Source of the DNA: Klebsormidium nitens
Taxonomy: Eukaryota; Plantae; Klebsormidiophyceae
Assembly (NCBI GenBank): GCA_000708835.1
Contig: DF237434.1
Location: 6,544 to 70,543, forward strand
Direction of reading: 5' to 3'
DNA length: 64,000 nucleotides
Shown here: one piece after another, positions 3,459-53,000 of the stretch
Layout: every line of letters starts with the position of its first letter
Position numbering within the stretch: position 1 is the stretch's first letter
Translations under genes and position numbers: made by a program
The notes under the pieces: model-generated
Seen by the model: only the letters and a program-made list of their open reading frames with translations
What the model was told of the DNA's origin: nothing
The model's database searches: none

Positions 3459-6400
3459 TCAGCTTTGTTCCTTTTGTTTCTTCTCCTTCGCCAACTTCTT
3501 ATAATCAACGTTCGGGTCGAAATCGTCGTCGAAGTCCGCCTCCAAGTCCTCCGCCTCAAACTCCAAGAAGTCTTCCAACGTCTCGAACTCTTCCGCATCT
3601 TCTAAGTATGCATCCTCTTCGTCCCACACCCACTCCTCATCCCCCTCTTTCGCAGCCTCCTCTCCGCCCCCCCTTTCCGCGGGCTCGATCGCCCCCCCCA
3701 TTGCATCCTCGTCCTCCTCCGCCCAGCCCCGTACTAAAGCTTCCGCTTCCGCCAGTCTTCGACCGGACGCCCCTCCCGCATCTTTCCGTTCCGAGCTTTC
3801 TTCCGCGTCTCCCGAATCAATGCTCTCAACTCGCAACTCCCGCTCTTCGCCCCCAACTGCCGCTTCTTGCTTCATCGCCCTAGCAACTAGACCCGTCCAC
3901 TCACTTTCCAAGTCGCTTTCTTCGTCGTCCTCTTTTGACACGCTCGTACCCGCCGCAGCCCCCGTGCTGACGTCATCCTCCACAGCGCCGCCGACCTGTG
4001 CACTCGTACCGACACCCTCTGTGCCGACATCACCCACCTCCCCGCTGACGTCTTCCTCCTCGTCTCCCCACTCTACTTCGTCGTCCTCTTCGATTTCCTT
4101 CAACAATCCCCGCACCGCTTTCTCGTACTCCTCAATCGCCGCCAGCTTCTCCGGGCTCCACGCGCCCGGCCGTAGCCTGCTGACGTCACCCTCCCCGCCC
4201 GCTGACGTCACCCCCTCCTCGGCCCGCCTCAGCGCGCGGTGCGCCAGGCTCAGCTGCTTGCACAGCCGCTTGAACGTCGCACGGTCGGTGCGCAGCTCCG
4301 CCGCCTCCATGTCCCGGAACGCGCTGATGACGTCAGCATACTGCCCGCCCCCGAAGAGCGCGTCGAGGACCGCCGTGTAGGTCGCCTCGTTAGGCGGCAC
4401 ACCGGCATCGTTCATGTCCTGGAGCCCATCCATCATTGCCCCGTACTGACCCGCTTTTCCTAACCCGTACACGAACGTGGTCCACAACCGCAGGTCGGGC
4501 GCTAACCCGTCCTCCTTGACCCGCGCAAACCACTCCCGCAGTTTCGCCTCGTCCCCGGCCAAAGCATATGCCGTAACCATAGTGGTGTAGACCTTCAGGT
4601 TAGGCGCATAACCGCTCGCCCGCATAGCCCTAACCGCGTCTTCCATCTCCTCGAAGCGCTTGCAATGGCCGTAAGCGTCGACGATCACCGCGTGGGTTAC
4701 GGAAGTCAGCCCTAACCCAGCTTCCTGCATTTGGCCAACTAGCATGGCGATGTCGTCACCCTCGCCGGCCTTCCCGGCAGCCTGGATGAGGCTCGTGTAC
4801 GTGAACGCATTCGGAGCCACACCGCTGTTGACCATTACTTCAACGATGCTGCCGGCCTCTGCAACAGAAAATGAAACGAAATAAGCTCACCGTTATTTCA
4901 GGCTTTATTTTTTGCATCTTTCCAATTTAAGAACGCGTTTGGGGTTACGCCGCTGTTGACCATCACTTCAACGATGCTGCCGGCCTCTGCAAAAGAAGAC
5001 CAAATACTGTAAGATTCTTCAGGCTTGGTTTTTGCGTGTTTCCAATCGTACGAATGCGTTTGGGGCCACACCGCTGTTGACGATCACTTCGACGATGCTG
5101 CCGGCCTCTGCAAAAAGAGACCAAGCGAGTTAAGCTAACCGACATCTCAAGCTTAGACCTAGGTAATTTTCTACCAGAAGAATCTGAATCATATCCTGAA
5201 CGCCGCTGCCAGCGTCTAACGAGAGAGCAGAGAACTAATCAAAATGTTGGGAAAATCTCGGACGTGTGTCATTTTGAGGAGAGTCGCAAGGTGTCTTCCA
5301 TGGCAAGGGCAAATGCAACAACAGCCGCTGTTGACCAGACAAAAGATCGACGATGCTGCCAGTCTCTGAAAGAAACGTCGAAGTTGCCAGTCTCTACAAC
5401 GGAAGGCAGGAAGCTCAGCTTCTCGCAACCTTTGACCTTGATTACGCCTTTGACCTTGATCACGGGATTCCGCTCAGAAGCTGCTCGTGACCCGCGAAAC
5501 AAAGCGACTTAGCAAGGGAACGGTAAACGATGTAATCTATCACTGCCGCTATCTCTCAAGCTGTAGAAACGCTCCGTGCCGTTCAGCCAAGCTTGCTCGA
5601 ACCAACCCGGATGATCAGACACAACGCACTTCATTGGAGCGTACTGCTCAGCACAGTGCACGTCCTCACTCCAAAGCCCCTCAGTTTAGCAAAGGGTTAA
5701 TTCACTCAGTCCAGTAATGGTTCATATCGCGCATGGCGTTTCAAGCGAGTTCGACCGGTCTGAATCCACTCGCTGTGCCGAAAGTGCGGAACACGAAACC
5801 TCGAATTATCCAGCAGTATACCCCCGAGATCTATGAACGAGCCCACCTGTGTAGTCCCCGATCGCCGCGCACGCCGCCACGAGCGCCGAATACGTCACCA
5901 CGTCCGGTTCGTACCCCGCGGTACGCATGTCGTAAAACACGCTTAGCGCCTCGTCATATTGCCCGCACCGCCCGTACGCGTCAATCATTGCGGTGTATAG
6001 CGTATTGTCCATCTTCTGCTTCTTCCGCTTCATGTCGTAAAACATCGTCTCAGCCGACCGCCAGTTCCCGGCCCGCGCGTAGAGCTTGATCATCTCGGTG
6101 TAAATGTACAAGTTGGGGGAGTGCCCTGCTTTGCCCATTTCCTCCAACACGCGCTCTGCCTCGGCGACACGGTTGGCTGCGACGCACGCGTGGAGGAGCG
6201 AGCTGTAGACGACGAGATCGCCTTTCAGCCCCGAGCGCTCCATCCTGTGGCAAGTCGAGAAATTGACGTCAGCATAATCCTGGCAGGTAAGAGCATGAGC
6301 ATGCACGTCGTAAGGGCGTAGACCACAGACAAAGGTTATATTTATCCCGCAGAAAATAAGAAGATCAGGTCGCAGTGGAATCCGCAGCGCACGGGGAAGA

Positions 6401-10366: not shown

Positions 10367-13300
10367 TCATTCAATTGCGTTCTGGAGGATTCCAATTCCT
10401 TCCACCGATATCGTGACGGTATCACCAGGCACCAGCCACCGTGGCGGCTTGAAGCCCGCACCAACACCTGCAGCCCAATCGACGAAAACCAAAGAGCGTC
10501 AACTGGCAAGCTCCCTTAGTTCGTTACCTTTACACACCACGCAATATAGCGATGCTGGTGCTGTCACGTACATTTCACCTTCGACCACGTTTGAAAGTGA
10601 AGCATTGTTTCCGGCCTGAGGATCAATGATTAAGCCTCAGCATGTTCGCTTGGTGCAGATTACAAAGTCAACCGCGAACTCCAACTTTGGACAGATGAGC
10701 ATCGCAGCAGAGCACCAGGTTCAAAAAGGGCCTTCGATTGAAGCCGCAAAGGCTTCTACAGGGAAGCCAAAGGCAGCAGCGACTCTACAACGGACGGGTG
10801 CCGTACCTGCAGGGGTTCCCGTGGCGATGATGTCACCCGGCTGCAGCGTGACGGCCGCCGAGATGGTGTGAATGAGGTCCCGGATGTCGAAGATCATCTC
10901 CGATGTGCGGGACTCCTGCGACAGAAAGCTTGCGTGATCACATTTGAACGACTTTTGTTTAAAAGCCAAGTTGAATCTTGCTGATAGATAAGGTAACCTT
11001 TCGGTCGTGAGCTTAAATCTGTGCAAACATGCGAACGTTCTCGTTCACGTCAGCAGTTTCGGCGTGCTGAACAATAGGAGCTAGTCTTTAAGCAGAAGTT
11101 TTAAACTGCGATTGGCAAATTGACATTGTAGACTATCTTCCGGGACTAGATTTGGGCCCATTTCGGCTCTTCTTCTAGGGGCGATTCGGTTTGGGGTCCT
11201 TTTCACCTGCCGCAGCTCCTCGTTGACCCAACACTTGATCCCCAGGTTCTGACCGTCGATTTGGGAGGCGGGGACGATCCAAGGGCCGACAGGACAGAAC
11301 GTGTCGACGCTCTTGCCTAGGAACCACTGCAGGACGAAGCGGAGACGAAATCAGGGTCTCTCAGCGTTCACGCATCTTCGATAACCCAGGTCTACAAAAG
11401 CATTTGGCCCGGTCTATGGATGGGACCTAGACAACGTTTTGCAGTGGTTGACGTCTTCTTCCTGAACCGTATGGAATTGGCAGATGGTAGAAGGGGCCCC
11501 TGAGATGCATGCGTTGACATCACTCGTCGGAAAAGCCATCACTCGTCGGAAAGGCCCGAGAGGCTTTCAGATATCCAAGATCTTTGCGTCTCTACATTTA
11601 CCGCAAAAGAATACATGACGGACAGCAGTTGTTGTTCAGTCTCTGGCCGGAGCGACTCTGGAAAACAGAGGGGTTTTGCTTTCGACCTTGCCGTTCGAGG
11701 CGCGTTCTTGAAGCAACGACAATGTCTTCCTTCTCTGCGTCAATCGGTTGGCTTTCGAACGGTACATTCAAAATATAGCGCTGCCTACAGGACAACAAAA
11801 CTGCCCGCCTTCCGCTTACTTACCTATGAAACAATATGCTCCAAAGCCTCTTTCACAAAGGTCGTCTCGTGACTAAGGAGGCACACCGAAGAAAGTTCTA
11901 TGTGCCCTTTCTCACCTGCTGATGGTTTCTTTGCAGGTCTCGGGCGGTGATGTCATTGAGAATGGTGTATCCGAACACGTGGCCCAATGCGTCCTCTCTC
12001 GAGATGCCGCGCCCGCCGGTCCCGATGACGACAGCAAGCTCTGCATGACGTCAGCGGGATTACCTTGAGTCACACGATGAGATGCAGTGCACTTTGATTC
12101 TTCAAGCAGTGAGGTGACTGAGAGTCGTCTTCCTCCCCTAAGAATCCTCTTCCGGAGGCAGTCGAAGCTGTGGGCAGATGCTGCTGTACAAAGCCTCCTT
12201 TCTTGACACGTCTGCATCGAAATCCTTTTACACCGACCCATTCGAAGCAGTGAGCAAGGTGAACACACCCGATCTAGAAAAGTGAGTGCAACCCAAGAGA
12301 CTATCACACTGGGCTCATCGGGCGCTGCAGTCTGACTTCTGTCCATTTTCGACGGGCTGTGGTCACCACGTGCACTGTTGACATCGGAAAAGCCAACGCG
12401 ACTCGACCTCCTGTGGCCGAGAACTTAACGGCTGAGAGAGCACTTCGGGAAAAAGTCCATTCCCTATTGAGACCCGTCCGGACGATATTCTTGTTTGACT
12501 GAATGAAACAGAATGACCCTAAAGACACGAGTTTGAACGAACTACAGGTCCACCAAGGCGGGCGCAACTCGCTCCAGAAAATTGTTAGACTGTACGCGAG
12601 AAGACTCTGCTGAAACTGGACAAATCTTCATCTCATGATATATTTAAAAACGCACTAATCGTGTGTCCTTTCCCTGATGAAGAAAATTAGCATCCTTGCT
12701 TGTACCTGCCTCGTAGTCGACTTCGGATGAGACGCCGTGCGGATACTGTACGGCTTCCCCCGGACCGATCACCGACTCGGCGGCTTTCGTGAAGATGATA
12801 GGAGTCTGCACACGGAACAGCAATGATTCACGCAACTTCTCCTTCTAGAAGGTTGGGTTTTCATGCTTTTTTGTTTGTGGTATGAGAACGCCCGAGCTAT
12901 AGGGGCCGGATCTGCACGCAGAACAGCAATGGGGCGCTGCTATCGCTCGAGCTTATTTGTCGGTGTTGATTTTCAAATCGAAGCTTCATAGAACGTCAGC
13001 TCAATGAAATGACTGTCGAAAGGTCCGAGGTGAGGATTAAAGACCTGCTTCTTCGTCGGCCTTGTCCGACCGCAGAAAGCAAGCAAAGCGAAGTCGAATC
13101 TTGAGGGCCGTGTTGCTTTGGAGACACACTCGAGATAGTCTCTGATAGAAGACAGTTACAGCGTACTTTGGACGACGCGAGGAGCAACAGCGAGTTACTG
13201 TTGTACTCAAGAAAGCTGTCAGTGCCAGAAGGTACAGACCTCTACATGAAACACAGGACGTTGGAAACTTCCGGTGCACAACCCGACTCGGGACGAACCA

Positions 13301-15317: not shown

Positions 15318-17487
15318 CAGAGTCCTGTGCCTGACCTCAGGGCACTTTTGCCAAACATACGAGCCCCTTTGCACTTGTCTAGCCGTCAAGTACTTGGATG
15401 TGTGAAAACCAAAGGGTACCGGCTGATTTGAATGCCGCTCCGCGCTGCAAATCTGTGACTGTGGTCTTGATTCCGCTATAAGAATGTCATACTTTGTGTG
15501 GAAGCGGCGATGAAGAGTTTGTGACGCTCTGAGAACAGGATTGCCTGCGTTGGGTGCAAGGTGGCTGCTGAAGAGGGCAGTGCCTAGCTTACAACAAATG
15601 CGATCGACGCTGAAGGCCTGCACCATCCTGGAAGAGCTGACGGATCATGGTAAGGCGACTTCGCCAGCAATGAACGTGTCTCAGTTCATCAGCACCTCAG
15701 AACCAGACCCGGTTGAAGTAATACCCAGATTAACACAGCGGCCCATGAGCTGTGCTTGCTCCTTGCTGCACTGGCAGCGCCACGGCCCAGCCGCCCTACT
15801 TTGAATGCAGCGCCGCCGGCTGAATTGAAAGCTCAAATTGCACGCCACACCAGGCCCGGCCTCAGGCCCTGGAGGGCCATGCCCATTGAAAACCTTTGCA
15901 TGGCGGCGTTACGGTTTGGCCCCTGGGCTCTGGCTGGCAGCCCCCCTGCCGCCTTCTCGGACGGTTCTGAAAGCGTCGGCTACGTTTCATAATTTTTGAG
16001 TCCGAGTCCAAACCCAGATGAATATGAACACAGACATTCTGATACATGCTCGACTTGTAACGCCAGGATGCCATTAGAGTTGAGCCGGCACCAGCCGGCA
16101 TGAAGGACTGGCACCCTGTCAAACTGAAATCCAGAGGCTGCAGCCATGCCATGTGTTCAGACTCCTGCGTACGAAACTTTGCTCATCATCTTCTTCCATG
16201 CATGTCTCTTGAGGGAGTGCTGGCGCTCCAGGTGCTTTGTGCTGGCTTTGTGTGGCACCTAGAAGTCGGTCAAAGTGCAAGTAGGAAGCCTTCGACGCCC
16301 CTTCGACTTGAGCGCTGAGCCTGGAGGGAAAGATGCCAGACGCGGTTTTGGCAAGGGAGCCTAATGTCATGACTGGCCACTTTGGAGGGTGTTCTTCTCA
16401 GCTCAAGTAGCAACTACCTTCAAGCGGAAAGGTAAGTTTGAAAGTACTGCATCGTCTCAGAATCAGTGTCTTTCCTCTTAACCACGTGTGACTGGCCCCC
16501 GAGCTAGCAACATCAGGGCTGCGAACCTCTCTCAGTGGCTGCTGCCTTGTCTGATACAAATGCAGGTCGTTCCTTCAGAGTAGGTGAGGAAAGCACGGCA
16601 GCATTGTGAGTCTCTCTGTCACTAAAAAATTGAGCAGTACGATTTTCCATTTTGGTTCTGCGGTATGGTGGGGCAAATTGTATCGTCTCATCCTCCTGAC
16701 TTTGTGAAGCAGGGTGAATTTTGAATCCGGTGGTTTCTGAGCTGCGCTTTTCAGTGTTAGTCTTATGTTGTGCAAGTTCAACGTAGACTCAGTCGTGAGC
16801 AGAACCAGGTTCAAGATCAGGATGTGGTATCACCTGCAGTGCATAAATCTGTCTTGTCTTGTCAAAACCTCACAGAACAAGCAGCAGGCTCCATCATCAT
16901 GCTGGGTGAAGACACCGAAGATATTAAAATGCAAAATCATTGCAGCGATGGAGTGGTCCAGAAGCAAGCAGCAATGCATCGTCTTTTGAGCCGATGGGCT
17001 GAATGGCTATCGTTGGAGTCAGTAGGAACTGCTATCCGGTCTGATTTCCCACCAGATGCCCTGAAGTCGTACTTCTGATCTGCCTAAGGCTTCTACCACT
17101 CCAATGCGAATCTTCTCAAGAACGAGGTGTTGGGGAGACTCGTTACAACACCTTGTTGTCAACTCAGAAGGACCTGTTACCTTGATAGAGAGACCATTCA
17201 GCAAGGTTGGCAAAGGCTTCATTGGAATAACTTGCTCCGAAGCAAGTTTAGAACAATAGCACCATTGTGCAAGCTGCCCGCTTGAGATACAGTAGCGCAG
17301 GCGAGTCGCTGTCTGAGAATTGCTGAGGGGAAAGACATTACAAGCATCACGCAGTTCTTTTCAAGGCATGCCAATAATGGCAACTCACCTTCCGTCGATC
17401 TCCTTGCAGGAAGTCAGCGTTGCGCGCTGTGCGCTGTCTCGCGCTCTGTCTCCACGTTCAAGCAAATGACAGGAACCTCTTAAGCGG

Positions 17488-24934: not shown

Positions 24935-27900
24935 TCATTCGTCTTCAGAATCGGGTCCGACACCTTCAACGATCAATTGATGAAGGTCCTGGCATGCTTG
25001 CAAAGTACTAGCTACTGCATCTTCATAGCCCGCACTCGCGCCTCCTTCCACTGCTTCGTGTATGATGTCGTCAACGTTGTTCACTTTCTCCTCAATCACA
25101 GTTGTCCTCTTCCGTAGAGACGCAATCTCTTGGGGGGGATACAGGCACGCGCCGAGCTCCTCTACTTGCAAGCAGATTTCACTGCAGGAACACACAATCG
25201 AATGATCCTCGAATCAGACGCCAAAACAACAATCATTTGACCGCTCTTTGAAATGACGTCCTCATCAGGAGCATCACAAGAAGCCATGACCGATGGCCTT
25301 CCTTAAATTACTCTCTTGGATGCCGTTTCAACTTCTGTGGTAAGAACCCACGCCCAAAAGTATGCGAGTCTGGTCTGACCAGTCTATGCTGAGGGAGGAG
25401 GAGGCCTGGCAGAATCTATGATCAAATTGAAGCGCTGACTTCTCAGTTCAAGACGCTTTTCATAAACGAGGGCCCTCAGTAGGCTCGCACTTAGTCAAAG
25501 ACGTCCACAACAACAGTCGAGACCAGCAGGGAGGGGTCTTATGCCCCGTCGATGACTGAAACGTGGTCATCAGCGAATTCGGTTCCTCAAGACTCGTCTA
25601 CGCATTTGCGACATTGCACCGAGCCAGCATCGCTTGCAGCAGAACCCCCGAAACGCCAGAGTCAGCATGCCTCATCTCTTTGGCCTCAACTTATCAAAGT
25701 GCCACAGCTGCACGCCTATGCACCCTAAACTTCAGAATAAGTCCCCCATGAAGACTAGAATCGTTGCTGAAGGTCACCAAAACCAAAGCAAAAATTGCTC
25801 GGACGCTGAGATGACCCCCTCGATTGCAGTCTCCGTGACAGATTCTCCAAAATATTCACGCCGCGTCCGGCTCTCCACAAGCCATTCCGCTTGTCCCTGA
25901 CGCGAACGTTTCGACCAAATCAACGACCGTTCGGACAAAGCTGCGACCCCGCCCAGGAAAACCTCACCTGCAGTTCCCATGCAGCATCTCCAGCACAGTC
26001 AGCGCCGCATTCTTGGCACCCTTGACAACGAGACGCTGCACTCCACCTCCCCAGACAGGCATGGTTCCGCACGTTGCTGAAATTCAGCGCTTCCCCAACA
26101 AGAACAGTCCAAACAAGAAACGCAGTCGCCCCCACCTGCAGTCCCCGTGCACCATCTCCAAAACGTTCAGCGCCGCGTCCTATGCCCCCTTCCAGCTAGA
26201 AAAAGCACAATCGTTCAGACGCGAATGTATTACCTGTGAAATGACCCTCACCTGCAGTCGCCATGCAGCATTTCCAGCACATTCAGCGCCGCGTCCTTGC
26301 TCCAGTCCGGTGGGGGCGCCCACTTGGCCACGACGTACAGCAGCTGTTTCAGCAGCGCAAGCACGCCCTCCGCTACTAGCACCGCCGCACGCACCAGCTC
26401 CATATCTTCCGCGTCGAACTCGGGGTTGTAGTCCAGGATCTCGGCCATGTCCCCCAAATCGTCTGGCAGGCTCAATGCGCCCCTGTCGTTCGATTCCGTC
26501 TTTTGGTCCCCCCCCTGAGGTTCGGTCGTCTTTCCCCCCGTATGCGGGGCTTCGGCTATTCCCCCCGCTTGCGACTCTTCGCTTCTCGGTAACGTCTCAA
26601 ACGAGGCTGAGGCTTCGTTTTCTCGCGACGCCGTCGCTTCTGCCCCGTCTCGAGCCTTTCCGACTCTCAGCCCCTCCTGCGACGCTGTCGTTTCCCCCCG
26701 ACCTTGTGATACGTTCCTATCTTCTGATGACCCAGCTTTCGTCCCCCGGTCCGATGACATCCCCGCCTTCCCCTCTTCTACGTTAGGATCCCCGCTGCCA
26801 GCTCTGCTTGGTGTTTCCGAACCAGCCTTGCCATTCGTTTGACTGGAACTCGTCGAACTTCGGATGGCCGAGTCCCCCAAGTGCATCCGCTTCAAACCGT
26901 CCCCCAAAACGCTTGTTGCGTCGCGACTCTGCCCGTTCGATACCGCCGACTGGCCAGTGAGAGACGCCCCCGATGCGCCCCCCTTCGAAGCACTCGCCTC
27001 GCTGCTCGTGGTCGCCCTGCCCTCCAACGCCATACCCCCACCTAGACCTTCTCTCTCGCTCGCACTCTCACCCCCCTTATCGTGATAATCCGCCTGCCCC
27101 TGACTGCGCGTCGCACACTTTTCACCCTCCTCAAGCCGCGCCCCTTCCCTATCGCTCTGACCTTTTGTCTTTTCCTTCATTGCCCCCCCCTCCCCCCTCT
27201 CGGGCTGTGCCCCTTCCTTTCCGCTCTCCCCCCCATTTTGACCGCTGGTCGTTTCCTTCATTTCCCCCATCTCCCGCAGCGTGTCTTTGACAGTTGCCGC
27301 CAGCAGCGCAAGCCCCCTGCCCACCGCGACCTGGTTACTCGTCGGGGCCTTCTTAACCGCCTCGCAGGTTTCCCAAACCCGGCCCGCGAGCTTTGGCAGC
27401 GCAGAGGCCCTGTCTTCGGCGGTGGCGCCACGCTGGAAGAGGTCGATGCAGCCCTCCAGAAGCTGGGCTGAGGCCTGTCACAAAAACGCAGTCTGAGTAT
27501 TCTTCTGACCTAACCCGAAAACCGAGTATCTAGGCAGATAACTTAGAAGGGTCGATCAAAAGTTTTGTCTTCGGCGATGGCGCCTCGCTGGAAGAGGCAG
27601 ATGCAGCCCTCCAGGAGATGGCCGCAGCCTGGCAGGAAAGTGCAGAGTCTGAAGTATGAAATTTCAGCTAACAGAAAGGGCCTGATCGGAAGCTGCGCAA
27701 CTCTTGAGCCACTTCATTTGCTCCACATTGTGCAGCGGGGTTTTCCGGTCCTGGAGGGCGAAACAGAACCCCCCATGTTGGATGAATCATGGCTGTACGA
27801 CAGAGAGGCTGCGGGAAGCTTAGAAAAGGGGTGACGTCAGACAGGCTCGCCGTTTCATGGCAGCGTCAGATTGAGAACCACTACGGAAACAAACCGTTGA

Positions 27901-29570
27901 AAGTTGAAACAAACTATTGAAATTGGAGGTCAAATCAGTGGGCTTGCGGGATACAGTGGCAGACGACATTGACCGGTTGATTGGCGCACACGCTTTGCCT
28001 TCAGCCGGTGGCACGTTGCTCAGAGGTTGAACAGCTTCTAGGAAGCTGGACCGCAGCCCGGCACAAGACCGCAGTCTGAGTTTGATGCAGAAAGTGGTCA
28101 CATCTAGCTTGGAGAGAATCTGGAGTAGGCACACACAAAGCGACAGCTCCTGACATCTGTGACCAGGGTAACACAGCGAGTTTACCTAATCCCCCTCATC
28201 TCTCACCAATCAGTGCCAACTTGATCAACACCAATCAGCTGCGAAATGAAGACTGAGAGATTTCACAGAGACTGAGAAATGTTAACGGGCAACTGTAATC
28301 CTGAACGAGGAATACAGCCATTCTCGATAACAAAGCAGCAGTCTCAGATCTCAAACAGCTTCCTCACATCTGCAGTAGCGGTGGCCCTGATGCTGCAAGG
28401 AGAGTCGGCCCCGCCCCACAGACCAAGAACTGTTCAGAATACGCTCGGGGAAATAGGTATGGTCTGAGTCACCCGTCAAACATCTCTCCAGATATCGTTT
28501 GTCCGTAGGAACGCAGAAACGGTCTTTTGAACTTTTCAAACTCTCCAACACACCTCAACAACTGCGGTTGCGGTGGCCCTGATTGCAGCCAGGAGCGTCG
28601 GCCCCGCCCCCGCCGTGAAGCCGTGGCAAACAGTGACGAAGGCAGAGACGGCTTGCAGGAGGACGTTGAGTAGCAGGAGCCCGTCTTCTTTGTCGACTTC
28701 ACCCGACCATGCCATCGCGGCTGCAACAACGTTAGCAGTATATGCCCTGTCAGAACTCAAACAAGTCTGCAATTTCCCCGCTTCTTGACCACTGCTCAGG
28801 TCTACTTTTTCACCCCCAAAGTAGCACCTGCCACCCCAAAACCTTGTGACTAAGGCCCTCCCACTGCCAACTGTCATCAGAGAGAGGCTGTTGCGGGTAG
28901 CTTCCCTTTGTCCTCGCTCCGGTCTTGGGGGGCTTGTCATGGGCTCATCTGAATGTGAGGGCTCCGACGATCCTACAACAGCCATAGCCATGATGATAAA
29001 GGCAAGCTCTCTTGTGCTTGCGAGTCACACCACCCTTGATTTCACAGAGGAGACATGATCACAAGCTCTCTCGATGGCTTGTCAACGCACACCACCTTTG
29101 CTTTCGTTGAGTCGGCGGGAGACTGCAATGACTGGAGGTACTGGAAATGGTTGCTGCCAATACGCAGCAGTTTCTCATGTCATCAATCAAACAATCTTTC
29201 AGCAGGCTGATGCAGACCGGTCTCAAAGTCACATTGACCAGATTAGACTACGGACCTGACTACTTAACCGCTGGCCTTTCCCAACCTTGCGCCCTATCAG
29301 CATTGAGAAGCACCAGAACCCACACCCCAGAATTGGAAGACCCCAAGAATGCAGGAACCCGTGCACTAACCAACTTCAACGAAACCTACTTTTTGTGGCT
29401 TCTTTGGAAACCATGTGCGCTGCGGCCAACAGCTCGTTCCTGGTGACCTTCTCTCCGACCCCTTCCACAGCGGCAACTGTCAGCAGCTTCAATTGTTCCC
29501 GCATCATCAAAGGGCCTTTCACTTTCATCCGCGCGAGGACCGCCTCAAAAGTCTCCTCCTTCTTTCCCAT
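24935..29570 (-). CDS. CCNDBP1: Grap2 and cyclin-D-interacting (GCIP) family protein with a large low-complexity insertion
   Basis: Exons 29570-29390, 28720-28554, 27474-26252, 25181-24935; phase-consistent. Plant GCIP-type motifs SKEATKTAMAWSG, CHGFTAGAGPTL, LAGRVWETCEAVKKAPTSNQVAVGR, VKDTLREM, QVEELGACLYPPQE. Confidence 0.87.
25961..26305 (-). repeat. Three copies of the GCIP exon-3 3' end plus donor (real donor after 26252; echoes ending near 26136 and 25968)
   Basis: GACGCGGCGCTGAA..TGGAGATG.TGCA.GG..ACTGCAG|GTG is repeated; each copy keeps CTGCAG|GTG. Confidence 0.9.
27410..28081 (-). repeat. Echo copies of the GCIP intron-2 acceptor plus start of exon 3 (27565-27660 and 27997-28081)
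   Basis: Real CAG|GCCTCAGCCCAGCTTCTGGAGGGCTGCATCGACCTCTTCCAGCG vs copy CAG|GCTGCGGCCATCTCCTGGAGGGCTGCATCTGCCTCTTCCAGCG (offset 154). The more distant copy shares intronic cgcagtctgag and decayed exon sequence. Confidence 0.85.
28362..28622 (-). repeat. Echo copy (28362-28425) of the GCIP exon-2 3' end with a GTGAG donor-like site
   Basis: gcggtggccctgat...ggag.gtcggccccgcccc occurs at both 28378-28416 and 28570-28610. Confidence 0.8.
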
Positions 29571-30464: not shown

Positions 30465-33400
30465 ATGGCAGCTAGAGGGATCCTGGGACCAGGAATTGTT
30501 CCGACAATAATGGGAGCGAAGGCCGGTCATGCAGAGCCTCGTGCTGCTGAGCAGCGGGGACCCATCTTGAAGATCATGAAAGATGAGAGTGCTCTGAAGA
30601 GCAAGGCTGGGCCGATCGGCAGCCTGAAGATCATTGATGACAAGTGGGAACACACTGGGGAGAAAGTCAACCAGGTGCGTCTGTGTTGGCGAATGCTTTT
30701 GGGGGGACTGGGATGATTGTCATTCATCGGAAAGGATACTCAGAAGCCACCTGAGAATTGCTTCTGGAGCTGTGGCAGATTCTGGAGGGAAGAACTTGGA
30801 CTGCCATAGCTGTACACTTGGTCCGCTCATCCTGCTTTTTCAGTGAAGGTCTTTGTGGCTAGATCAGGCCACGGGAAATGCACCACTCCACTCATCCAAT
30901 CAGAGAATTGCCAGTGATTATGCCACAGGTATGGAGTTCCTATGGCCTCTTTTTACGACACTTGCGCTTGCGCAGAGTTCTTTGAGGGGCTCCGTATCAC
31001 CTTAAACATACCCGTTCATCTGACCACCTATATTCGATTCTTCATTCCTTCCTTCCTTCCCCACTTTCTCTCCAAGGGCTCCTTCGCTTGTTCCCTGTCT
31101 GTCCAAATTCAAATGAACTCCCCGTTCCTTCGCTTCTTCAGTTCTTATCCGAAAGCAACGTTGACTACCAAGTCATTGGAGTCCTGGGAGCCCCAGGCGT
31201 TGGAAAGAGCACCATTCTGAACGCCCTATACGGTCTGGCTTCAGATCATCCAAGCATAGTGGCAGGCCGTACCCCGCCGCCCTTTGCGGTGCAGTCTGAG
31301 GAGGCGAGAATGTTGGCGAGGCATAGTTCTAGCGGGGTGGAAATGCGGGCAACTGCAGAGAGGCTCGTCCTGCTGGACTCACAGGTGAGGTTTGAATGGA
31401 AAATGAGTCGGTCTATCTAACGTTGCTCTCGTGTTCCTAGAGCCTTCGATGCCCGGGAAATTTGCCACGATGGTGCGTGCTGCAAAACTCGGAAGAAGGT
31501 GATGCGAGCGCTCTTGATTTGTACCTGACACTTTTAAATACCTGGTCTAAGTTACCATCTCTTCAAAATTGACCAGTCAGCCCATTTGGCTCGATGAACC
31601 TGTCAATTTCTCAGTGTCCAGAACCTCTCAAGTTTCATCTCACTCGCTTCCAACTCGATCAAGAGCCCACCTACGGTTCACTTTTTTCCTCGGCCTGTAC
31701 ATTGTAACCTGAGTCTCTTAATCCCTCCTCTTGAGGCACGTCTTGAGCCCCTTTTTTCACTGAAAGCCGGTTGTTGTCTGCGATCTCATTCCCCAGTAGT
31801 TGGTTACCCCTTCTCCGTCTTCCCCAAGACAAACACTCGCAGAGCATTTTTTGTGTTTAGTCCTTCCTCTTGCAGCCTCGTCAGCCTCTATGGCCATATA
31901 TCTCACCTTAAGAACCACCTGCCACTGAGGGGCGGCTGTCTTTCCGTCGTTTTTGCAAGAGCATATCCAAAGGGATCCACGAAGGACAAACCTCTAGATC
32001 GGTGCACTCTTTTCGTTTTCCGCAGCTCTTCTCCAGCCCCGCCGTTCTTACATATCACCCGCCTCTAGCGTCTACGAAGATTCATACATTTGAAGCACTC
32101 CACTTTACCTCTTTCATCCGGTCATTTGTCGAACGACGAAATTCTGCGTCAAAGTGCTCTCTTCTGCTATGCAGCCCGTCTTCAGCCCCTCCGTTCTCGT
32201 GCACATGACCGCCCCTATCTTCTCTTTCAAAGACACTTCAATCCCCAACCCACCTTTACGCACCTTAATTTGTCCAACTTTCTAAAATCGACAAACGGTG
32301 AGGTCGGCGCGTTTTTTTGGCTTTTGCAGCTTTTCTTCGGCCCCTCCGTTCACCCTCCTCTTGCGTCTTTTTCATTCTTAGTCAAACTCTTACATGCTAA
32401 TTGCTCCTCTTGATCCTTCTCATCCGGCTTCATACAAACGACAGATTGTCAGGTCAAAGGGCTCTTCACTTATTTCTTAGCCCGTTCTTTGCCCATACGC
32501 TCTCATAGATATCTTCCGCTCCAACCGTCTTTGAAGCCACCTTAATTTAGCTCCGGCTGTATCATATTCTCATCGGTCCACTTATCTATGAAGGACTAAT
32601 TTTTTGAAGAGCGCTCTCTCTATTTTAGCAGCCCGTTTTAGCCCCTCCATTCTGACAGACATTCTCGCCTCGACCGTCTCTTTCCAGCAATTGTTTGTCT
32701 CTCCTCCGGCTTTTCACGAACGACAATCCTCCGAAGCAGAGCGCTCTCTTCTGCTTTCGCAGCCTCTTAAGCCCCTCTGTTCTCACAAGTGTCCGCCTCT
32801 ACTGTATAATTTTGTATTGAGAGCGTCCGTAACATTACTCTCGTTCGTCCAGCTTGTTGGAGGAACAAATTTCTATGCCAAATTCCTCTCTTCTGCTTTC
32901 GCAGCCCGTCTTCAGCCCCTCCGTTCACAATGTTATCAACCCCGCCTCTAGTGTCTACTTCGGTGGCAATAACGTATCTTCGCGCCTCTTGATTCCAATC
33001 ATCCGGCCTTTTTTGAACAACAGTTTTCTTAATCAGACCGCCTATTGTGCTTTTGCAGCCCGTCTTCAGCCCCTCCGTTCTCACTGACATCACCCGCCCC
33101 GACGGCTCCTCATCTGTGACTCCATTTCCGGGGGATCCCCCCGCAGCGGAGCTTGCGCTTGAAGCCATGGCGCTGCAGCAGGCCGTCTTTCTCCTCTCGG
33201 TGTGCCACGTCATCATCGTCGTCAGCGAGGGACTAGAGGACCGCCGGCTGTGGGAGCTGCTGCATGCGGTGAGAAGCTGACACCTGTCTTAATGCCACGT
33301 GTCTTATTTCCTTTGTCCTCTCCCATGCCAGGGTTCAGAGTACAGCAGGCGATGAGAGCACCCGTCCCCGAACCGACGCTGACCCAAGCATGCTTCTGAC

Positions 33401-35128
33401 GGGGGCGTTTGCTGACGTCAAACTCAAGACACGTGTTTGAATTCCCATCGGCGTCGGAACCGGCAGCAGCTGCCATCAGCATTCATTCTTGCCACCCGCG
33501 GTGCCATCCGCATAGTTTACGTGGGGACGCGGGCGTCGGCTGACAGTAACAGGCAGGATTGTACTCTGCCCTCCTGTCCGAACTTCGGTACGAACCAGAG
33601 GTGGATGCTGCCATGAACCTGCGGTTCCGAAACCCCCGCGAAAAGGGTCTACTTTTATGTTTGGTCTCCTCGATGGACATGCGCTCTCATCCAGTTCTCT
33701 TCGACGTGCAATGCTCTTTCAATTTATTTTATCGCTATGCCTTCCCACCGAATTGCAGTTCTTGTAGGGGCGGTAGGCATTTCATGACCGTCATATGTCG
33801 TCGTCAACGGCAAGACTTGGACGGTTCACGTTCTAAACAGCACTTGCGATGAGACCCTCGGTTTCGCTAGATCCGACGAGGCGTGTACGTCCTTTGCCTA
33901 CTTCAAGCGTTCCTAAATCAGCGGTGTGATTCTTTTTCCTCCTTCGAAGTTCCGCTTCCTTTGCCACAGCTTGCGCTACCGCCCGCGCTCTCCGGCATTC
34001 CGTTATTCCGCTCTTCATTCCTTCAAAATTCCGGCGTCTGTGACTGCGCTTCACCAGTCCTTTACCCACCCGCTACTTCGGGCTCAAAAACAGGCCGATT
34101 ATAAGCAAGCGTTTTGCATAGCTTTACACCAGGTTACGAACCGCACGGGCTAACGATTGGCCGTTCCTCCAACCGTGTTTCTCTTTGACCAGGCGCAGCT
34201 CCTTCGCGACCGCATCTACCGGCCTCTCAGCATCCGTCCCCCGACTCCCCCCTCCCGCCAATCAGAACCCGTACCCAGCCAGTCCCCGCGGCCTCCAAAC
34301 GAAAGACCCGGTTCTAGTTCCAGCGGCGTGACCGCTTCTCAAGCGTCAGGACGGGGCCAACCGGGGGGACCCGTTTCTCAGACGGGGCCACCCATCCTTT
34401 CCCACCCTCACCTTAACCCTAACCCTAAACTTAACCAACCCGGGGTCCGGCCGTCGCAAGGGGACAGTCGACCAGGGTCTGCGGCCAGCTCGCGGGAGGA
34501 GCCGCAACGGCCCAGTTCGGCGTCCGCCGGGCGCCCATCGGAATTCCGCCCACCAGAAGCTCGGAGGAGCCCGGAAGAACGGCCGCAGCGAGCGGGGCAC
34601 TCCCCCGAGGTCGTCTTTGTGGCGACCAAGCTGAGGGGGAGCGAGCTGCTAGGTGGGCAACTGCGAGCGGCGCAGGAGGAGTTAACAGCGGCGTTCCCCG
34701 CTTTGGCTGCGCCGCGATCTGGACCGGGTTTGGACGTGGTACAGACCGTACGAAATCGGACGTACGGACCAGGGACAGATGGCGCTAATGGGAAGGCTCG
34801 ACGGAACTCAAGCGAGCGGAGCCGGAATGAACGGCTGCAGGCAAGCGGAGAGTCGAATGCAAAGGGGGAATTGAGAGACAGTCCTAGTGTCAGCTTCTAT
34901 GGTCTGCCGGCGAAGGGACCCAACAGTGCGGCGTTTGAGAGTTTTCATTTGTCTCTGAGGAGCTTGCGCGATCAGATTCTAGGCATCCCGAGAAGGCACC
35001 TTCTGGGGAAGCCGGTCACTGAGGCCAGCTGGCTGAGGTATACCAACAAGGTCTGGAGAGACGTACGAGAGTCGGACGCAGTCAAGGAATATTGCTCTTT
35101 ACTGCAGTCAGATGGCTTCTTCCGTTGA
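30465..35128 (+). CDS. SMG9: Nonsense-mediated decay factor SMG9 (P-loop NTPase fold); an extra 5' exon is possible
   Basis: Exons 30465-30674, 31142-31384, 33059-33268, 34193-35128; all phase 0. Motifs VIGVLGAPGVGKST, ERLVLLDSQPVFSPSVL..RPDGSS, FLLSVCHVIIVVSEG, PEVVFVATKL, SLRDQIL and the W..Y..KVW..V..S C-terminus match plant SMG9. Confidence 0.9.
31726..33110 (+). repeat. Tandem array (~130-155 bp period, ~9-10 units including the real one) of the SMG9 intron-2 acceptor plus start of exon 3
   Basis: gcag|cccgtcttcagcccctccgttc-like cores at about 31735, 31870, 32021, 32171, 32326, 32478, 32628, 32759, 32901 and the real one at 33055. Upstream aacga..a and ctctcttctgct tracts also recur. 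Confidence 0.93.
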
Positions 35129-47003: not shown

Positions 47004-50000
47004 ATGGCGGATAGTGATTCGGCGCAGCCAACGAGCAGCTCAGAGAACGACTCAGAGTTTGCAGCATTGCTTGAGGCGGAGCTTGACAAGGACGATTGGG
47101 GGTCAGAAGATCAAAATGCGGCTGGCGTGGACAGTCACAGCCATGAAAGAGTTGACATAGAGTAAGTGATCAGCCAATGTGAACAAACTGAGAGGCAGCA
47201 CCGAATGCCGTCTCAGAATGGTCCTGCTCAGCTGTCACTCCTTAGGGACCCGGATGAACAAGGACATAAGTTGCAATTGCGACAGCGTATCTTGTTGACA
47301 GGCGCTTCTTTTTGAGCAGATTGCATGATAGGTTGGTGGTGCATGATTGATCATCTGAAAGAAGAGTTGGACACTTCTTATGCCCTGACTTTCCTCGTTA
47401 CAGGGATGTTGACAACCAGATAGGGGCGCAAGTGGCGGAGGCACCGTTGATAGGACATGCTGCTAGCCAAGCCGTTGACGAACCAGGTGGGGCAGAAGGG
47501 AAGGGCAAGGAGGCCGGAATCTGTCCTCCCCACCCCGGATACATGTGGAACATCTGCATTCGCTGTGGGAAGGCAAAGGAGGAAGATGATGATGAGAAAG
47601 GAGTGGCCCTACGGTATCTTCATCAAGTGAGACCTTCTCACCAAAACTTTGTAAACATCCACATCTATGTGAAGATCGAAGAAAGGACGTTTGGTTAGCT
47701 AGTCCCCACAGGTTGCACTTTGGTTCTTAAGGCTGCAAATTTTGCTTCTGTATTTGATTTTGAGCTTCTATTTTTCCTTTTCACCCTCGTTGCTCTTGCC
47801 TTTCAAGTTAATCAGTTTGGCAAGCACAATAGAGCTTCACCAACACAACCACCCAGGTTAGGCTCTCAGTAAGCTCCGGATGCAGGGGTTGGAGGTGAGC
47901 GCGGTCGAAGCGGACCGTCTCCGAAAGGACGACCTCCAGAAGCTGCTGGCGCAGAAGAAGCTGTACCTGGTAGTGGACCTCGACCATACGTTGCTCAACT
48001 CAACAAGGATGGCCGAGGTGAGGCGTCTGCCCGCACAGACGGACTGCGTCATTGCCCCAGCTCTTTACACCACTGACGAGGCTTCTTTGAACCGCAGTAT
48101 GTTGTTGAGAAGGCTTGCCTGAACTTCAACTGGCGCATACAGCTTTACTGGGCCACAAAGGTACTTCTGACTGTGTACCGTGCCTGAGACTGGAATTTGG
48201 ATTCTGCCTGCTCTGCTCATGCCAGCAGTCGTCATAGTTGATGGGAAAGCAGATTTGCCAACCATGCCACTATGCCAGCCTCGTCTCCAAATGAACTTTC
48301 TAGTGCCACATGAACATGCCACCCAAGCTACCACGTTAGACACATCAGCCCTTTCACAATTTCCACTCCCGTCCTCATTCCTTCTTTCTAATCATAACCT
48401 TCCTCCAGGTCCCAGACAGCGACGCCGCCTACCTCCGCTCCGCCTACAGCCCCACCACAGTCTTCCCCCCCGCCGCCGCCCCCAGCGCCAATGAAGACGA
48501 CCTGCTGTATCAGCTGCCGCCTCTGTCGATGTGGACCAAGCTACGGCCGTTTGTGCGCGAGTTCCTGGAGGAAGCGGCGGGGCTGTTTGAAATGTACGTG
48601 TACACCATGGGGGAAAAGCTGTACGCGCAGGTGACCCAGGCCGCCTGCCTCTCACTGTCGCCTTTTTACGAAACGTGCTGAATTCTCACCTGATATCGTT
48701 AAGACATGCCGAAACTTATGAAGGAAAAGAACATTTGAGCACGGCGAAAGACTTGGATCGTGCGTTGTCAGAGAGTGCAGAGGAGTCGCGGAAGAGAGAG
48801 CACCGTTTGTCAAACGGCTCTGGAAGGTTTGTCCAAAACTCCAGATCTTGGCCAGTGGCTCTTTGGATACTCGACAGAAGAAGTAACTTTAAAGGCATAC
48901 CTCGCTCCTGTTCCCGTCTAGCTTTCCTAAGCGTTTGGCAGCGGCGTTGACAATCTCCTTTCCACCAGCTCAGCTGGGCTTAATGGCACAATTTAAGCTT
49001 GTGATTGTCGAGACGAAATCCCAGCGTTCACGGTCGAAGGTACACGGTCTGTTGAACGGTTGCTTCCAGGCGTTGATACCAGCCTCAGTGCAATTCACCC
49101 GCTGAAACCATTCTTTCGTCAGTCTACCAGCAGGCCCTTACAAGTCACTAATCTGGTTCTAATTCTCGCTTATGGCTGAACGAGAAACTCATTGCAATGT
49201 ATGTGCAGGCCATGTGAGGCCTTCGTATGTAAGGCAACAAGCGTGTCTCACTCACTGGTATACATCCCATCCATCACCTATTGCTGAACAAGCTTTACAT
49301 CGTCGTATGCGTAGGCGATGGCCCGGTTGCTGGACCCCTCTGGGCGGCTCTTTGGGGAGCGCGTGATCAGCCAGCAGGACAGCACCAGCCGCAAGACCAA
49401 GGACCTGGACGTCGTGCTCGGGGCGGACTCCGCCNNNNNNNNNNNNNNNNNNNNNNNNNNNNNNNNNNNNNNNNNNNNNNNNNNNNNNNNNNNNNNNNNN
49501 NNNNNNNNNNNNNNNNNNNNNNNNNNNNNNNNNNNNNNNNNNNNNNNNNNNNNNNNNNNNNNNNNNNNNNNNNNNNNNNNNNNNNNNNNNNNNNNNNNNN
49601 NNNNNNNNNNNNNNNNNNNNNNNNNNNNNNNNNNNNNNNNNNNNNNNNNNNNNNNNNNNNNNNNNNNNNNNNNNNNNNNNNNNNNNNNNNNNNNNNNNNN
49701 NNNNNNNNNNNNNNNNNNNNNNNNNNNNNNNNNNNNNNNNNNNNNNNNNNNNNNNNNNNNNNNNNNNNNNNNNNNNNNNNNNNNNNNNNNNNNNNNNNNN
49801 NNNNNNNNNNNNNNNNNNNNNNNNNNNNNNNNNNNNNNNNNNNNNNNNNNNNNNNNNNNNNNNNNNNNNNNNNNNNNNNNNNNNNNNNNNNNNNNNNNNN
49901 NNNNNNNNNNNNNNNNNNNNNNNNNNNNNNNNNNNNNNNNNNNNNNNNNNNNNNNNNNNNNNNNNNNNNNNNNNNNNNNNNNNNNNNNNNNNNNNNNNNN

Positions 50001-53000
50001 NNNNNNNNNNNNNNNNNNNNNNNNNNNNNNNNNNNNNNNNNNNNNNNNNNNNNNNNNNNNNNNNNNNNNNNNNNNNNNNNNNNNNNNNNNNNNNNNNNNN
50101 NNNNNNNNNNNNNNNNNNNNNNNNNNNNNNNNNNNNNNNNNNNNNNNNNNNNNNNNNNNNNNNNNNNNNNNNNNNNNNNNNNNNNNNNNNNNNNNNNNNN
50201 NNNNNNNNNNNNNNNNNNNNNNNNNNNNNNNNNNNNNNNNNNNNNNNNNNNNNNNNNNNNNNNNNNNNNNNNNNNNNNNNNNNNNNNNNNNCTTGGGTCG
50301 AACTTCGCCGTGCTCATCTTCGATGACACCGAGGCGGTGAGTTGGCTGACCCTTTGAGTTTGGCGTTCCGAAACGCTTCGAGCTGCCAACGGTCGTTTCA
50401 AGACAAGTGTCGTACTCTGGTCGTAAATAGCAATCTTTACCGTTCATCCTGATCGTCGTTCTCGGGGCCGATATTCCGCCGTACTCATCATCGATGCCAC
50501 AGAGGGGTGAGTTGGCTGACAGTCTGTTTTGATTGCAAGTCGTCTTGAGCTCTACTACCCGTCCTTTCATCTGTGACGAGGTTTCTCGTTTTAGTCGAGC
50601 GGGGGTGGACAATCGTCTCCCTTGATCCTGACGTCAACCCAGCGGACCTGGGCCGTGCCGGAAATCAAGCGTGTGTGTTTGCAGACGGCATCGCTTCTCT
50701 TCCGTCGCCTTCGCAACGTAGGTATTGCTTCTTGTGTTAGACAGCTTTCTTCTCGGATTAAGAATCTGCATCCGTCTGTCCGCGAGTTGATTGGGGCAGG
50801 TAGCTAGATCGAGCGATAGGAATGGAAAGCGCGTCCAATTGCAACCGAATGTGGGCTGCAACCCCTGAGAAGAAAACGATCTCGCCGTTCATGCTTTCTG
50901 TCTTTCACCGGGGATACCCCCTGGGCCACCTTTCAGAAACACGAGGCACGTCATATCGACGGTTCTAACTCTTTCGCTTCTGACGCTCCGAGCCCTCCAG
51001 AAGCCCCTGTAAACATCAGGGCTTTCGCTCTGTCCTGTAGTTTTGAAGAGAAGGAACGGGCCAACCAGGTAACGTCACGTGGCGGTGTAAAACCCGGAAG
51101 CTCCGTACCCGTCAGTCTGCTGTCGTCTAATAACAGATGGGAGATTCCCGTATTCTCCCCTCCACCAATGTGGTCCAGTGGCGTCCCATCTGCTAACGTC
51201 ACGTGGCAATCCGAAAGGCTCCGCATTTTACGCCCCCCAGGAGCCCCGCCGGTCTGCTGGTGTTTGAACTGTACTAGTTGTTTCGGTTGAGCTGAAAACC
51301 TCGTTTGCTGGTGCCACGTGGCAATCCAAACAGCTCCGCATTTCTGTGCTCCCAGGGATGGCCTAAGGACCGGGCGAAAGTGCTGGTTATCGAGCGGTAC
51401 TACTTCTTCCATCTCCCGAACAAGATGGAAGAAGTGGTGTGCTTCAAAAGCCGTTCGATTTGCTGGTGCCACGCGTGGCAACCCAAACAGCTCCGCGATT
51501 TGTGCTCCCAGGTGTGGCCAAAGAACCGGGCGAACCTGCTGGTCATCGAGCGGTACCACTTCTTCCGGTCGAGCCGGCGCCAGTTCGGCCTGCCCGGGGA
51601 GTCGCTCGTCGAGGCCAAGAAGGACGAGTGCAGCGAGGAGGGGGCGCTGCGGGGCATCCTGGACACCCTCAAAACGGTACACGCCGACTTCTTTGCGCCG
51701 CGAACGGCGCCGGCGGACGTCCGACAGGTGAGGTGCCGTTGGAATCTTGTGTTTAGCGGGAGCAATTACAGAATACTGATTCTGCTTCCTTGTCCGTTTT
51801 GCGGGATTGAGTGCGACACACAATGCTGTCCATTTTGGAGCCGCATCTCTTAGCGGTAAGAGAGCCGCTAAGAGCTGCGGCTCCAAATGCAACGAGGATT
51901 CTAGGCGCTTCGTGCTGGATCTATTTTGCTGGGCTGCGCATGTGGACATGAAAGAAGGTCAAGTTGTGGTCCGCCCAGCACTGTACTCGTGTGACTTGTC
52001 TGGTGCAAACATCAGGACTTTAAAGGTAACAATCGGACACAACTCTAGTAATGTAGACCTGTAGCACGTCGTTTCCGGATGCCTCGTTTCCTCCGACCAG
52101 CCCTCATCCGGGTGCTTTGTAAGCTGACCGTTGATCTGACCGTCGAAGTTTTGAGGAAACGCTGTCACCACACTCTAATAATGGGGTGAATTGTCTGATT
52201 TTTTCGGAAACAACTGGCGATGATGCAATCCAGGATATCAAGCGCATGTGCGAAGCTTCATTCTTGGTCAATGTACTCCAGATGCTGGAATTGCAATAAA
52301 GCCAAAACTCTATAACCTGTCTAGGCTGACCTCGATAAGGGCGTCATGTAACGCATGTTCCTTCTTCTTGTGTCCTTGAAAACTTGTTCCGACTGACTAT
52401 CGATGCTGTTGCATGCGTCACCGCGAAGAATGACATCGTTAGAAATGGCCAGCAGGCCTAGCCGTCGACGATTGATAGTGAAAGGCAGAAAGGCGTCTTG
52501 TTTTATCTGAGCTGAGCTTTTTGATCCTCCTGGTCGCAAGCTCGTGGTGGTTATAATGCCTGCAAAGCTTCGTGGCGCCAAAGCCTTTGGCAAACCTCGA
52601 TTCGCTTGGTTTTAGGCTGACACCGCCGTTTGTTTTAGAAGCTCTGGGACGTGCACGGCCCACTTAGCTTGATTGAGCCGCGTCCACAGATTATATCCTG
52701 ATACGTTGCATGTTGCTTGTTGCTCTCCCTCGACTCAGTATAAAACGGGGTCCTGAGGCACAGGCCTGAATCGGTGAAGTTGTTGCCGTGAAAGTCCTAT
52801 CTTGTGCTGGCAAGGATCGGTGGGCTGCAAGATGCTGCGAATGATTGAGAGGACCGTCACACTTGTCAAACCGACATGCCCAGTCAGGTGCCGATTTGAA
52901 GTTTCCCTATTTGAGCGTGTTCATTTGTGAGGTCAATTTGAGCGGGGATTGCTGTTGCTTACCTGTCATTTCTGGGTTTGAACTGGACATGGGCGAGACA

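Follow-up and report, generated by a model that had tools for sequence, protein, structure and literature searches.

Tandem copies of splice junctions in four genes

Examination of a 64-kb stretch of the genome of the streptophyte green alga Klebsormidium nitens (64,000 nucleotides, hereafter the window) shows that seven true splice junctions each lie beside tandem copies of themselves. These junctions belong to five introns of four unrelated genes: a PPR gene (one array), GCIP (three), SMG9 (one) and CPL4 (two). The repeated unit is made up of the gene's own exon edge, its splice site and adjoining intron, and the units are arranged head to tail next to the real junction. Arrays contain between one and nine copies with a period of 115-193 nt, and the exon part of the unit measures 40-64 nt in all seven; beyond these 40-64 nt, the copies have no match to deeper exon sequence. 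Most copies are old and diverged, at ~75-90% identity, and ~50-80% of the host intron is taken up by arrays. A previous reading made without database searches (the sequence-only reading) had described seven arrays in these genes, with an exon part of ~40-65 nt and a spacing of ~105-190 bp, and self-BLAST together with a repeat search recovered all of them. The intron growth it proposed is also borne out, as array-bearing introns are ~1.0-1.7 kb long versus 390-690 nt for array-free neighboring introns. In contrast, the copies it listed in FAH and VOC did not hold up, the former being a 21-nt match that is not significant (E=3.5) and the latter giving no match.

Self-BLAST of the window returned 14 direct matches at E<1e-3, which make up the seven arrays. 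The two members of each match are separated by less than 900 bp, with no dispersed matches at that threshold, compared with only one match, also local, in the inverted-match control. TRF alone detects only the PPR array, and the remaining arrays come from the separate repeat search. Matches between arrays are only 9-27 nt long, indicating that the units are gene specific, and the arrays are confirmed as local tandem repeats of each gene's own junction. A transposon or introner family was rejected on the same grounds, in agreement with the sequence-only reading. No array lying wholly within an intron or in intergenic DNA was found in the 64 kb, where the intron sequence examined included at least 8 kb free of arrays. 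Junctions were placed using an annotated protein, continuity of a Pfam profile, cross-species exon conservation or RNA contigs, and for the PPR gene using open reading frames, GT..AG ends and repeat spacing.

The PPR acceptor array (4803..5383, minus strand) is found in a 988-nt intron (5846->4859). The real unit spans 4803-4930, with the exon part at 4803-4858 and the AG at 4860-4859, and three copies, all of which keep the AG, have pseudo-exon starts near 4986, 5107 and 5365. The junction at 5846->4859 is predicted from open reading frames, from the GT..AG ends and from PPR repeats (VVTY to AFTY) that keep their exact 35-residue spacing once the exons are joined; two orthologue searches gave distant PPR proteins only, or results swamped by such proteins.

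GCIP is also located on the minus strand. The intron 3 donor array (25809..26307; intron 26251->25187) includes the real end of exon 3 at 26252, a position set by the annotated protein KFL_004850070 (tblastn) and followed by GTGAGG. Donor copies occupy 26130-26191 and 25962-26023, and a weaker copy is located ~428 nt downstream. Intron 2 (28553->27475), across which positions 74 and 75 of the Pfam GCIP_N profile adjoin, is one of two introns with arrays at both ends, the other being CPL4 intron 5. At its acceptor end (27474..28081), the real exon 3 start at 27474 is accompanied by a copy at 27566-27657 that keeps the AG and another at ~27993-28081 that has lost it. At its donor end (28349..28610), the end of exon 2 at 28554 is accompanied by a single copy at ~28349-28417, situated 193 nt downstream of the real site, in which the GT is lost. 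This last copy is found in K. nitens only, the same junction being without a copy in the relatives L004 and L002. GCIP exon 3 itself contains an in-frame tandem repeat of 81 nt, or 27 residues (27158..27275, minus strand), and an 81-nt period is also present in L004 (13045-13290), indicating that local duplication strikes exons too and survives there in frame.

The largest of the seven arrays is located at the acceptor of SMG9 intron 2 (31728..33103, plus strand; intron 31385-33058), upstream of the real exon start at 33059, a junction fixed through exon conservation in L004, L002 and a third relative, L005. The array covers ~79% of the intron and consists of 8-9 copies rather than the approximately five counted previously, with pseudo-exon starts near 32905, 32762, 32632, 32481, 32331, 32174, 32024 and 31737. 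A 62-nt tandem repeat is located downstream of SMG9 in L005.

CPL4 intron 5 and its transcripts

Arrays are present at both ends of CPL4 intron 5, as the sequence-only reading had proposed, but its account of the donor array (49313..50520, plus strand) needs correction. The array is composed of the real site and three copies, with periods of 173, 173 and 170 nt, and two of these units, the real donor and copy A, are hidden by an assembly gap at 49435-50291. The exon before intron 5 covers 49313-49434 plus 26-27 nt inside the gap, whereas copies B (50292-50387, GT at 50337) and C (50463-50520, GT at 50507) lie beyond it. An independent DNA contig (X1 record 2, 49430->50292) shows that the true size of the gap is 332 nt and not 857 N, and that the sequence inside includes one further copy as well as the true end of the exon with its donor. 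The X1 contig, made by a different assembler, is identical to 50292-51842 and reproduces the CPL4 arrays without mismatch. A protein look-up of the antisense open reading frame for the gap-spanning contig gave no record. Such arrays break short-read assemblies, here through one mis-sized gap that concealed an exon end, and they can mislead gene prediction.

The acceptor array (51191..51566, plus strand) includes the real AG at 51510-51511, followed by the exon at 51512-51729, and copies with their AG at 51354-51355 and 51239-51240 (offsets of 156 and 115). CPL4 RNA contigs from three runs place the beginning of this exon at 51511-51513, and in X11 and X17 the 26 nt hidden by the gap are followed directly by 51511/51512. 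In the contigs of all three runs, splicing goes from the first GT to the last AG, and the copies are ignored by the major CPL4 transcripts, which bears out the earlier suggestion that intact-looking decoy sites are passed over. Donor copy B, although passed over, is identical to the real site at 43 of 45 nt, with both mismatches exonic and an identical donor motif. No decoy-spliced CPL4 contig was detected in the three runs, in which assembled contigs drop minor isoforms; rare use of decoys is therefore possible, and the RNA evidence covers CPL4 only. A protein search and two metagenome scans gave no match to CPL4 in relatives.

Persistence and decay of the copies

Related lineages had been suggested as a comparison by the sequence-only reading, and arrays are indeed found at the SMG9 intron 2 acceptor and at both GCIP exon 3 junctions in L004, L002 and L005. 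Counting K. nitens, these junctions are occupied in four lineages, in all of which the host introns are at conserved positions, and the units have turned over within lineages. The difference from K. nitens at four-fold sites is 0.28 for L004 and 0.52 for L002. Copy number and spacing vary freely among the lineages, and orthologous copies in L002 and L005 are ~82-84% identical, no better kept than the surrounding intron. In L004, the match of the first donor copy to the real junction extends across 97 nt of intron.

Neither purging nor conservation of the decoy splice sites was found. Of 26 copies, 20 retain the AG (17.7 expected), and 7 of 11 retain the GT (7.9 expected); the 5-nt donor motif decays as expected under neutrality, and identity shows no trend along the unit. 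Only the trinucleotide YAG shows a slight excess (19/25 versus 14.1 expected, P=0.03). Third codon positions show approximately double the frequency of mismatches between copies and the real exon (0.23 versus 0.10-0.11), as would be expected if the real exon drifted synonymously after duplication. Three SMG9 units (e154, e297 and e885) are 79-81% alike mutually, whereas their identity is 72-75% with the real junction and 67-75% with the collinear L004 units, a pattern that points to unit turnover, or concerted evolution, within the SMG9 cluster. Copies had been thought to decay with distance from the junction, but identity does not generally fall in this way and does so only in the SMG9 array of L004.

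Mirage-type minisatellites and alternative explanations

We consider it probable (roughly 0.72) that the arrays are neutral junction-spanning minisatellites of the "mirage" type that enlarge introns. Each would originate from a chance local tandem duplication of ~115-190 bp covering a splice junction. One junction copy, the last for acceptors and the first for donors, would stay joined to the rest of the exon, so that normal mRNA is still made and the duplication survives, whereas an equivalent duplication inside an exon would usually be lost. The general tendency to local duplication, seen in the 81-nt GCIP exon 3 repeat and the 62-nt L005 repeat, counts in favor of this explanation. Unequal exchange or replication slippage, for which the unit similarities provide part of the evidence, would then add, remove and re-seed units, and because adjacent similar units can exchange or slip, an array may persist and turn over at one junction for a very long time while its single units decay neutrally. 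The consequence would be introns two to four times longer that carry many silent look-alike splice sites, with choice of the real sites probably depending on selection of the first 5' site and on the acceptor being paired with the true exon downstream of it. The sequence-only reading had emphasized that the functional exon stays intact; the geometry is indeed seen, but it is a necessity of any tandem duplication that crosses a junction and not evidence of design.

Arrays of this kind had been thought undescribed, but the structure is already published in amphioxus and in the human F7 gene. The amphioxus mirages (Adh3, the globins BflGb6 and BflGb9, troponin C and PGBD5) consist of minisatellite-like units across an exon/intron boundary, located at the 5' or 3' end of the intron, with a unit length of 150-160 bp in the globins; the AG or GT is retained in many copies without disturbance of normal splicing, clusters undergo concerted evolution, and allelic or somatic length instability has been shown (PMC3087553, PMC3902484). 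The K. nitens arrays share the junction-spanning unit, the head-to-tail arrangement beside the real junction and the turnover within a cluster. They differ in their green algal host, in having old, diverged copies instead of near-identical ones, in their density and in the share of the intron filled (seven arrays in 64 kb, 50-80% of introns), and in being found at shared junctions across four lineages, up to a difference of 0.52 at four-fold sites. In intron 7 of human F7, the IVS7 VNTR is a 37-bp minisatellite whose first unit lies across the exon 7/intron 7 border, and pseudo-donors identical to the real donor stay silent as the most upstream 5' site is chosen, a mechanism shown by mutagenesis in mammalian cells (PMC1557585). 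CPL4 is similar in that the first of four donor copies is used, and a comparable selection mechanism may operate in K. nitens; however, the F7 case involves a 37-bp unit, a single locus and donors only, as opposed to units of 115-193 nt.

Local tandem duplication that adds splice sites, with splicing restoring the original frame, is also the basis of the Rogers model of intron gain by duplication of an AGGT-containing exon segment (PMC3265369, PMC4974935, PMC2891723) and of intron gain by repeat expansion in Cryptococcus (PMC2395259). Unlike in those cases, the K. nitens host introns are old, common to four lineages and merely lengthened, with no new intron formed. Introner elements and intron-borne transposons likewise fill much of an intron with repeats, but the K. 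nitens units copy the host gene's own junction, with nothing common between genes and no dispersed copies in the window. Duplication of a whole intron, comprising the exon 1 end, a short intron and the exon 2 start, would account for introns with arrays at both ends, but was rejected as donor and acceptor copies are neither interleaved nor similar.

A mutational process targeted to junctions, with survivorship a minor filter, is a less probable source of the units. Breaks or template switches positioned by an exon-edge nucleosome, Okazaki-fragment processing or co-transcriptional splicing would repeatedly duplicate a fixed window of ~50 nt of exon and ~100 nt of intron. Every one of the seven arrays lies at a junction, with no internal or intergenic example, which is more than survivorship would predict; taking a rough survivorship share of 0.37-0.47 per event, p is ~0.001-0.005 for seven of seven, a rough estimate that relies on annotated gene spans and assumed intron counts, ab initio exon calling by codon bias being too weak for short exons to provide a junction map of the whole window. 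With only ~15% of the annotated stretch intergenic and with introns that are short before expansion, geometry alone would place one-third to one-half of survivable 150-bp duplications across junctions. Similarly, the seven independent arrays have periods of 115-193 nt and an exon part that keeps to 40-64 nt, a range not obviously expected from random breakpoints, but one that may reflect detection bias, since units with less than ~25 nt of exon fade fast, and selection against long pseudo-exons. Four lineages have arrays at shared junctions, with one array born in the K. nitens lineage alone, two introns are arrayed at both ends, and amphioxus globin mirage units are also 150-160 bp (PMC3087553); persistence at a junction is, however, explicable by ordinary array turnover. 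By the estimate of p, a process aimed at junctions, as in the sequence-only reading, is only weakly favored over ordinary local duplication with loss of exon-disrupting events. Tentatively, a junction-linked mechanism with a fixed geometry of approximately one nucleosome or Okazaki fragment, returning time after time to certain exon borders, could be a main driver of intron growth in Klebsormidium-like algae and, in a separate instance, perhaps also in lancelets.

It is improbable that the copies are functional decoys, that is, extra U1/U2AF sites through which splicing efficiency, the retention of introns or feedback coupled to NMD would be adjusted, for instance in the NMD factor SMG9. Most decoy AGs are intact, with the slight YAG excess, the same junctions are arrayed in four lineages and SMG9 hosts the largest array. 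Nevertheless, the AG, GT and donor motif at neutral expectation, the flat identity, the unremarkable preservation of orthologous copies in L002 and L005, the free variation of copy number and spacing, the lack of decoy-spliced CPL4 contigs in the three RNA runs and the unrelated functions of the host genes all argue against this. Assembly artefacts and alternative or mutually exclusive exons are very improbable: one array does coincide with the wrongly sized gap and copies do hold exon sequence plus one splice site, but the independent contig is exact and bridges the gap, genomes of relatives assembled by others carry arrays at the same junctions, and the copies have a single splice site, are cut after 40-64 nt, frequently contain stops or frameshifts and are absent from the CPL4 RNA contigs.

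If mirage-type minisatellites are common throughout the genome, simple local duplication across junctions could explain much of the intron length in K. nitens. The narrow exon part, the ~150-nt period and the amphioxus parallel are leads towards the duplication mechanism. The same abundance would provide hundreds of natural competition experiments between identical or near-identical tandem splice sites of which the outermost alone is used, and these would bear on splice-site choice in the plant lineage.

Tandem copies of splice junctions in the window

Comparison of the window with itself returned 14 direct matches at E<1e-3, the members of each pair lying within 900 bp of each other; none of these significant direct matches was dispersed. 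The identical search against the opposite strand, run as a control, gave one local inverted match, and therefore local direct repetition is far above chance. The direct matches group into seven arrays, in which worn copies of an exon edge and its splice site are arranged head to tail inside the adjoining intron. TRF detects only the youngest array; the remaining arrays were recovered by a separate repeat search. The sequence-only reading held that the units have no sequence in common between genes, and indeed similarity between arrays is limited to chance-level matches of 9-27 nt. A single local inverted repeat in the window is significant; it lies at the very start (1-51 and 276-326; 51 nt, 96% identical, arms 225 nt apart), and its arms may delimit a small mobile element.

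Three of the arrays belong to GCIP (annotated protein KFL_004850070), for which tblastn places four coding exons on the minus strand at 29570-29388, 28718-28554, 27474-26252 and 25186-24938, with exon 2 ending at position 74 of the Pfam GCIP_N profile and exon 3 resuming at 75. On that strand, intron 2 carries a donor copy 193 nt into the intron and two acceptor copies that precede exon 3 by 157 and 583 nt, and donor copies are found 116, 284 and 428 nt into intron 3. Exon 3 also contains an in-frame 81-nt (27-residue) tandem repeat in its low-complexity part (27158-27275), which is present in a relative as well (contig L004, 13045-13290). Intron 2 of SMG9 (31385-33058), which joins ...LLDSQ to PVFSPSVL..., has 8-9 acceptor copies in steps of ~150 nt, the farthest 1322 nt upstream, and the array makes up 79% of the intron. 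Three acceptor copies lie in the PPR intron (5846->4859), next to a putative junction that rests on the open reading frames, GT..AG ends and exact 35-residue PPR spacing over the join. In all units the exon part spans 40-64 nt and, two alignment splits excepted, similarity to the exon does not continue beyond it. A weak copy had also been proposed in FAH, where a 21-nt polypyrimidine tract plus AG recurs 106 nt upstream of the real acceptor (12805-12825 and 12911-12931); at E=3.5 this match alone is not significant.

Splicing across the CPL4 arrays

DNA and RNA contigs were placed on window 47800-53799, which includes the donor and acceptor arrays of CPL4 intron 5. An independent assembler produced a 2778-nt DNA contig that agrees base for base with 48536-49430 and with 50292-51842, the latter stretch arguing against the arrays here being assembly artefacts. 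The flanks of the assembly gap (49435-50291) are not continuous: in the same contig 332 nt separate 49430 from 50292, which makes the 857 N of the gap ~525 nt too long. The hidden sequence comprises the final 26-27 nt of the exon with the donor (agreeing with 50306-50350 at 43 of 45 nt) followed by one more copy, and gene models derived from this assembly are therefore probably wrong there. The third donor unit directly follows the gap and the fourth lies at 50463-50520, giving periods of 173, 173 and 170.

RNA contigs from two runs join 49313-49434, through 26 nt missing from the assembly (coding VLIIDDTEA), to 51511/51512; in a third run the contig begins at 51513. Therefore, the transcript is spliced from the first GT to the last AG, as had been predicted from sequence; neither the copy after the gap (VLIFDDTEA) nor the decoy AG at 51354-51355 or at 51239-51240 is used. 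The true array-bearing intron is ~1521 nt, compared with 391 and 684 nt for its array-free neighbours. Additionally, one RNA run yielded a 189-nt contig (depth 3.8) between the two arrays at 50871-51059, which might derive from unspliced precursor, from a minor isoform or from a different transcript.

Renewal of the arrays in related lineages

Searching with GCIP identified three related exon ORFs, on contigs L004 (Logan run SRR23617307), L002 and L005 (both from JGI metagenomes). The divergent SMG9-GCIP pair, head to head across a ~0.9 kb spacer, is kept on all three; in K. nitens it occupies 24935-35128, with RPB10 downstream of SMG9. Differences at four-fold sites are 0.28 between K. nitens and L004, 0.52 between K. 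nitens and L002, and 0.10 between L002 and L005. In all four lineages the acceptor of SMG9 intron 2 and both GCIP exon 3 junctions have copies; the GCIP intron 2 donor copy occurs in K. nitens alone. L002 and L005 have an orthologous copy in common at -364/-362, within an intron that aligns throughout at ~82%.

The arrays of K. nitens and L004 are roughly collinear. The SMG9 units e154, e297 and e885 are 79-81% identical to one another, compared with 72-75% to the real junction and 67-75% to the collinear L004 units. At the first donor copy of L004, the match to the real junction extends through 97 nt of neutral intron. As copies match their own junction at 76-92% identity and the split is near-saturated at silent sites, they cannot predate it, and therefore the arrays have been renewed within each lineage, as is usual for a tandem array whose terminal unit is the real junction.

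L005 also provides an example of young local duplication away from a junction, a 62-nt tandem duplication (2342-2466, 97% identical) downstream of the SMG9 coding region. Between FAH and GCIP, K. nitens has an 8.7-kb protein-kinase gene (15647-24306; 865 residues) of lower G+C (0.46-0.49); in L004 no kinase gene separates the FAH-like sequence from GCIP, ~0.8 kb away, and the difference is either an insertion in K. nitens or a loss in L004. No junction arrays were found in the introns (~6 kb) of this gene.

Origin and significance of the arrays

The narrow exon part across arrays, the arrays at both ends of two introns and the clustering of three around GCIP exons 2-3 are suggestive of a duplication mechanism aimed at junctions but are not proof of it. 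The annotated stretch is ~15% intergenic, and its non-coding DNA is mostly intronic. Assuming 150-nt events with at least 20 nt on either side of the junction, and taking guesses at intron number based on CDS length, junction-spanning events would form roughly 0.37-0.47 of those that survive, against which seven arrays of seven at junctions gives p ~0.001-0.005. This estimate is our own and rough, and favours aimed duplication only weakly.

Decoy sites were compared with expectations derived from the mismatch load of each copy. Of 26 copies, 20 retain the AG (17.7 expected); of 11, 7 retain the GT (7.9) and 4 the 5-nt donor motif (4.7), and identity is flat along the unit; by these measures there is no sign of purging or preservation. 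YAG shows a marginal excess (19/25, 14.1 expected, P=0.03). Copies differ from the real exon twice as often at third codon positions, which fits synonymous drift of that exon after duplication and requires no constraint on the copies.

We found no published account of such arrays in Klebsormidium, other green algae or plants. The sequence-only reading named no precedent, yet the "mirages" of amphioxus are tandem repeats over exon/intron borders, some with units of 150-160 bp, that leave splicing undisturbed and evolve in concert (PMC3087553, PMC3902484). Similarly, among the identical donors of the human F7 intron 7 VNTR, splicing selects the one farthest upstream (PMC1557585). Intron gain by duplication makes a new intron (PMC3265369, PMC4974935, PMC2395259), whereas the K. 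nitens arrays do not. The arrays are real and well delimited; they extend a known type of repeat to a new lineage, in which it is unusually dense and long-lived, and most likely represent a neutral route to intron growth.
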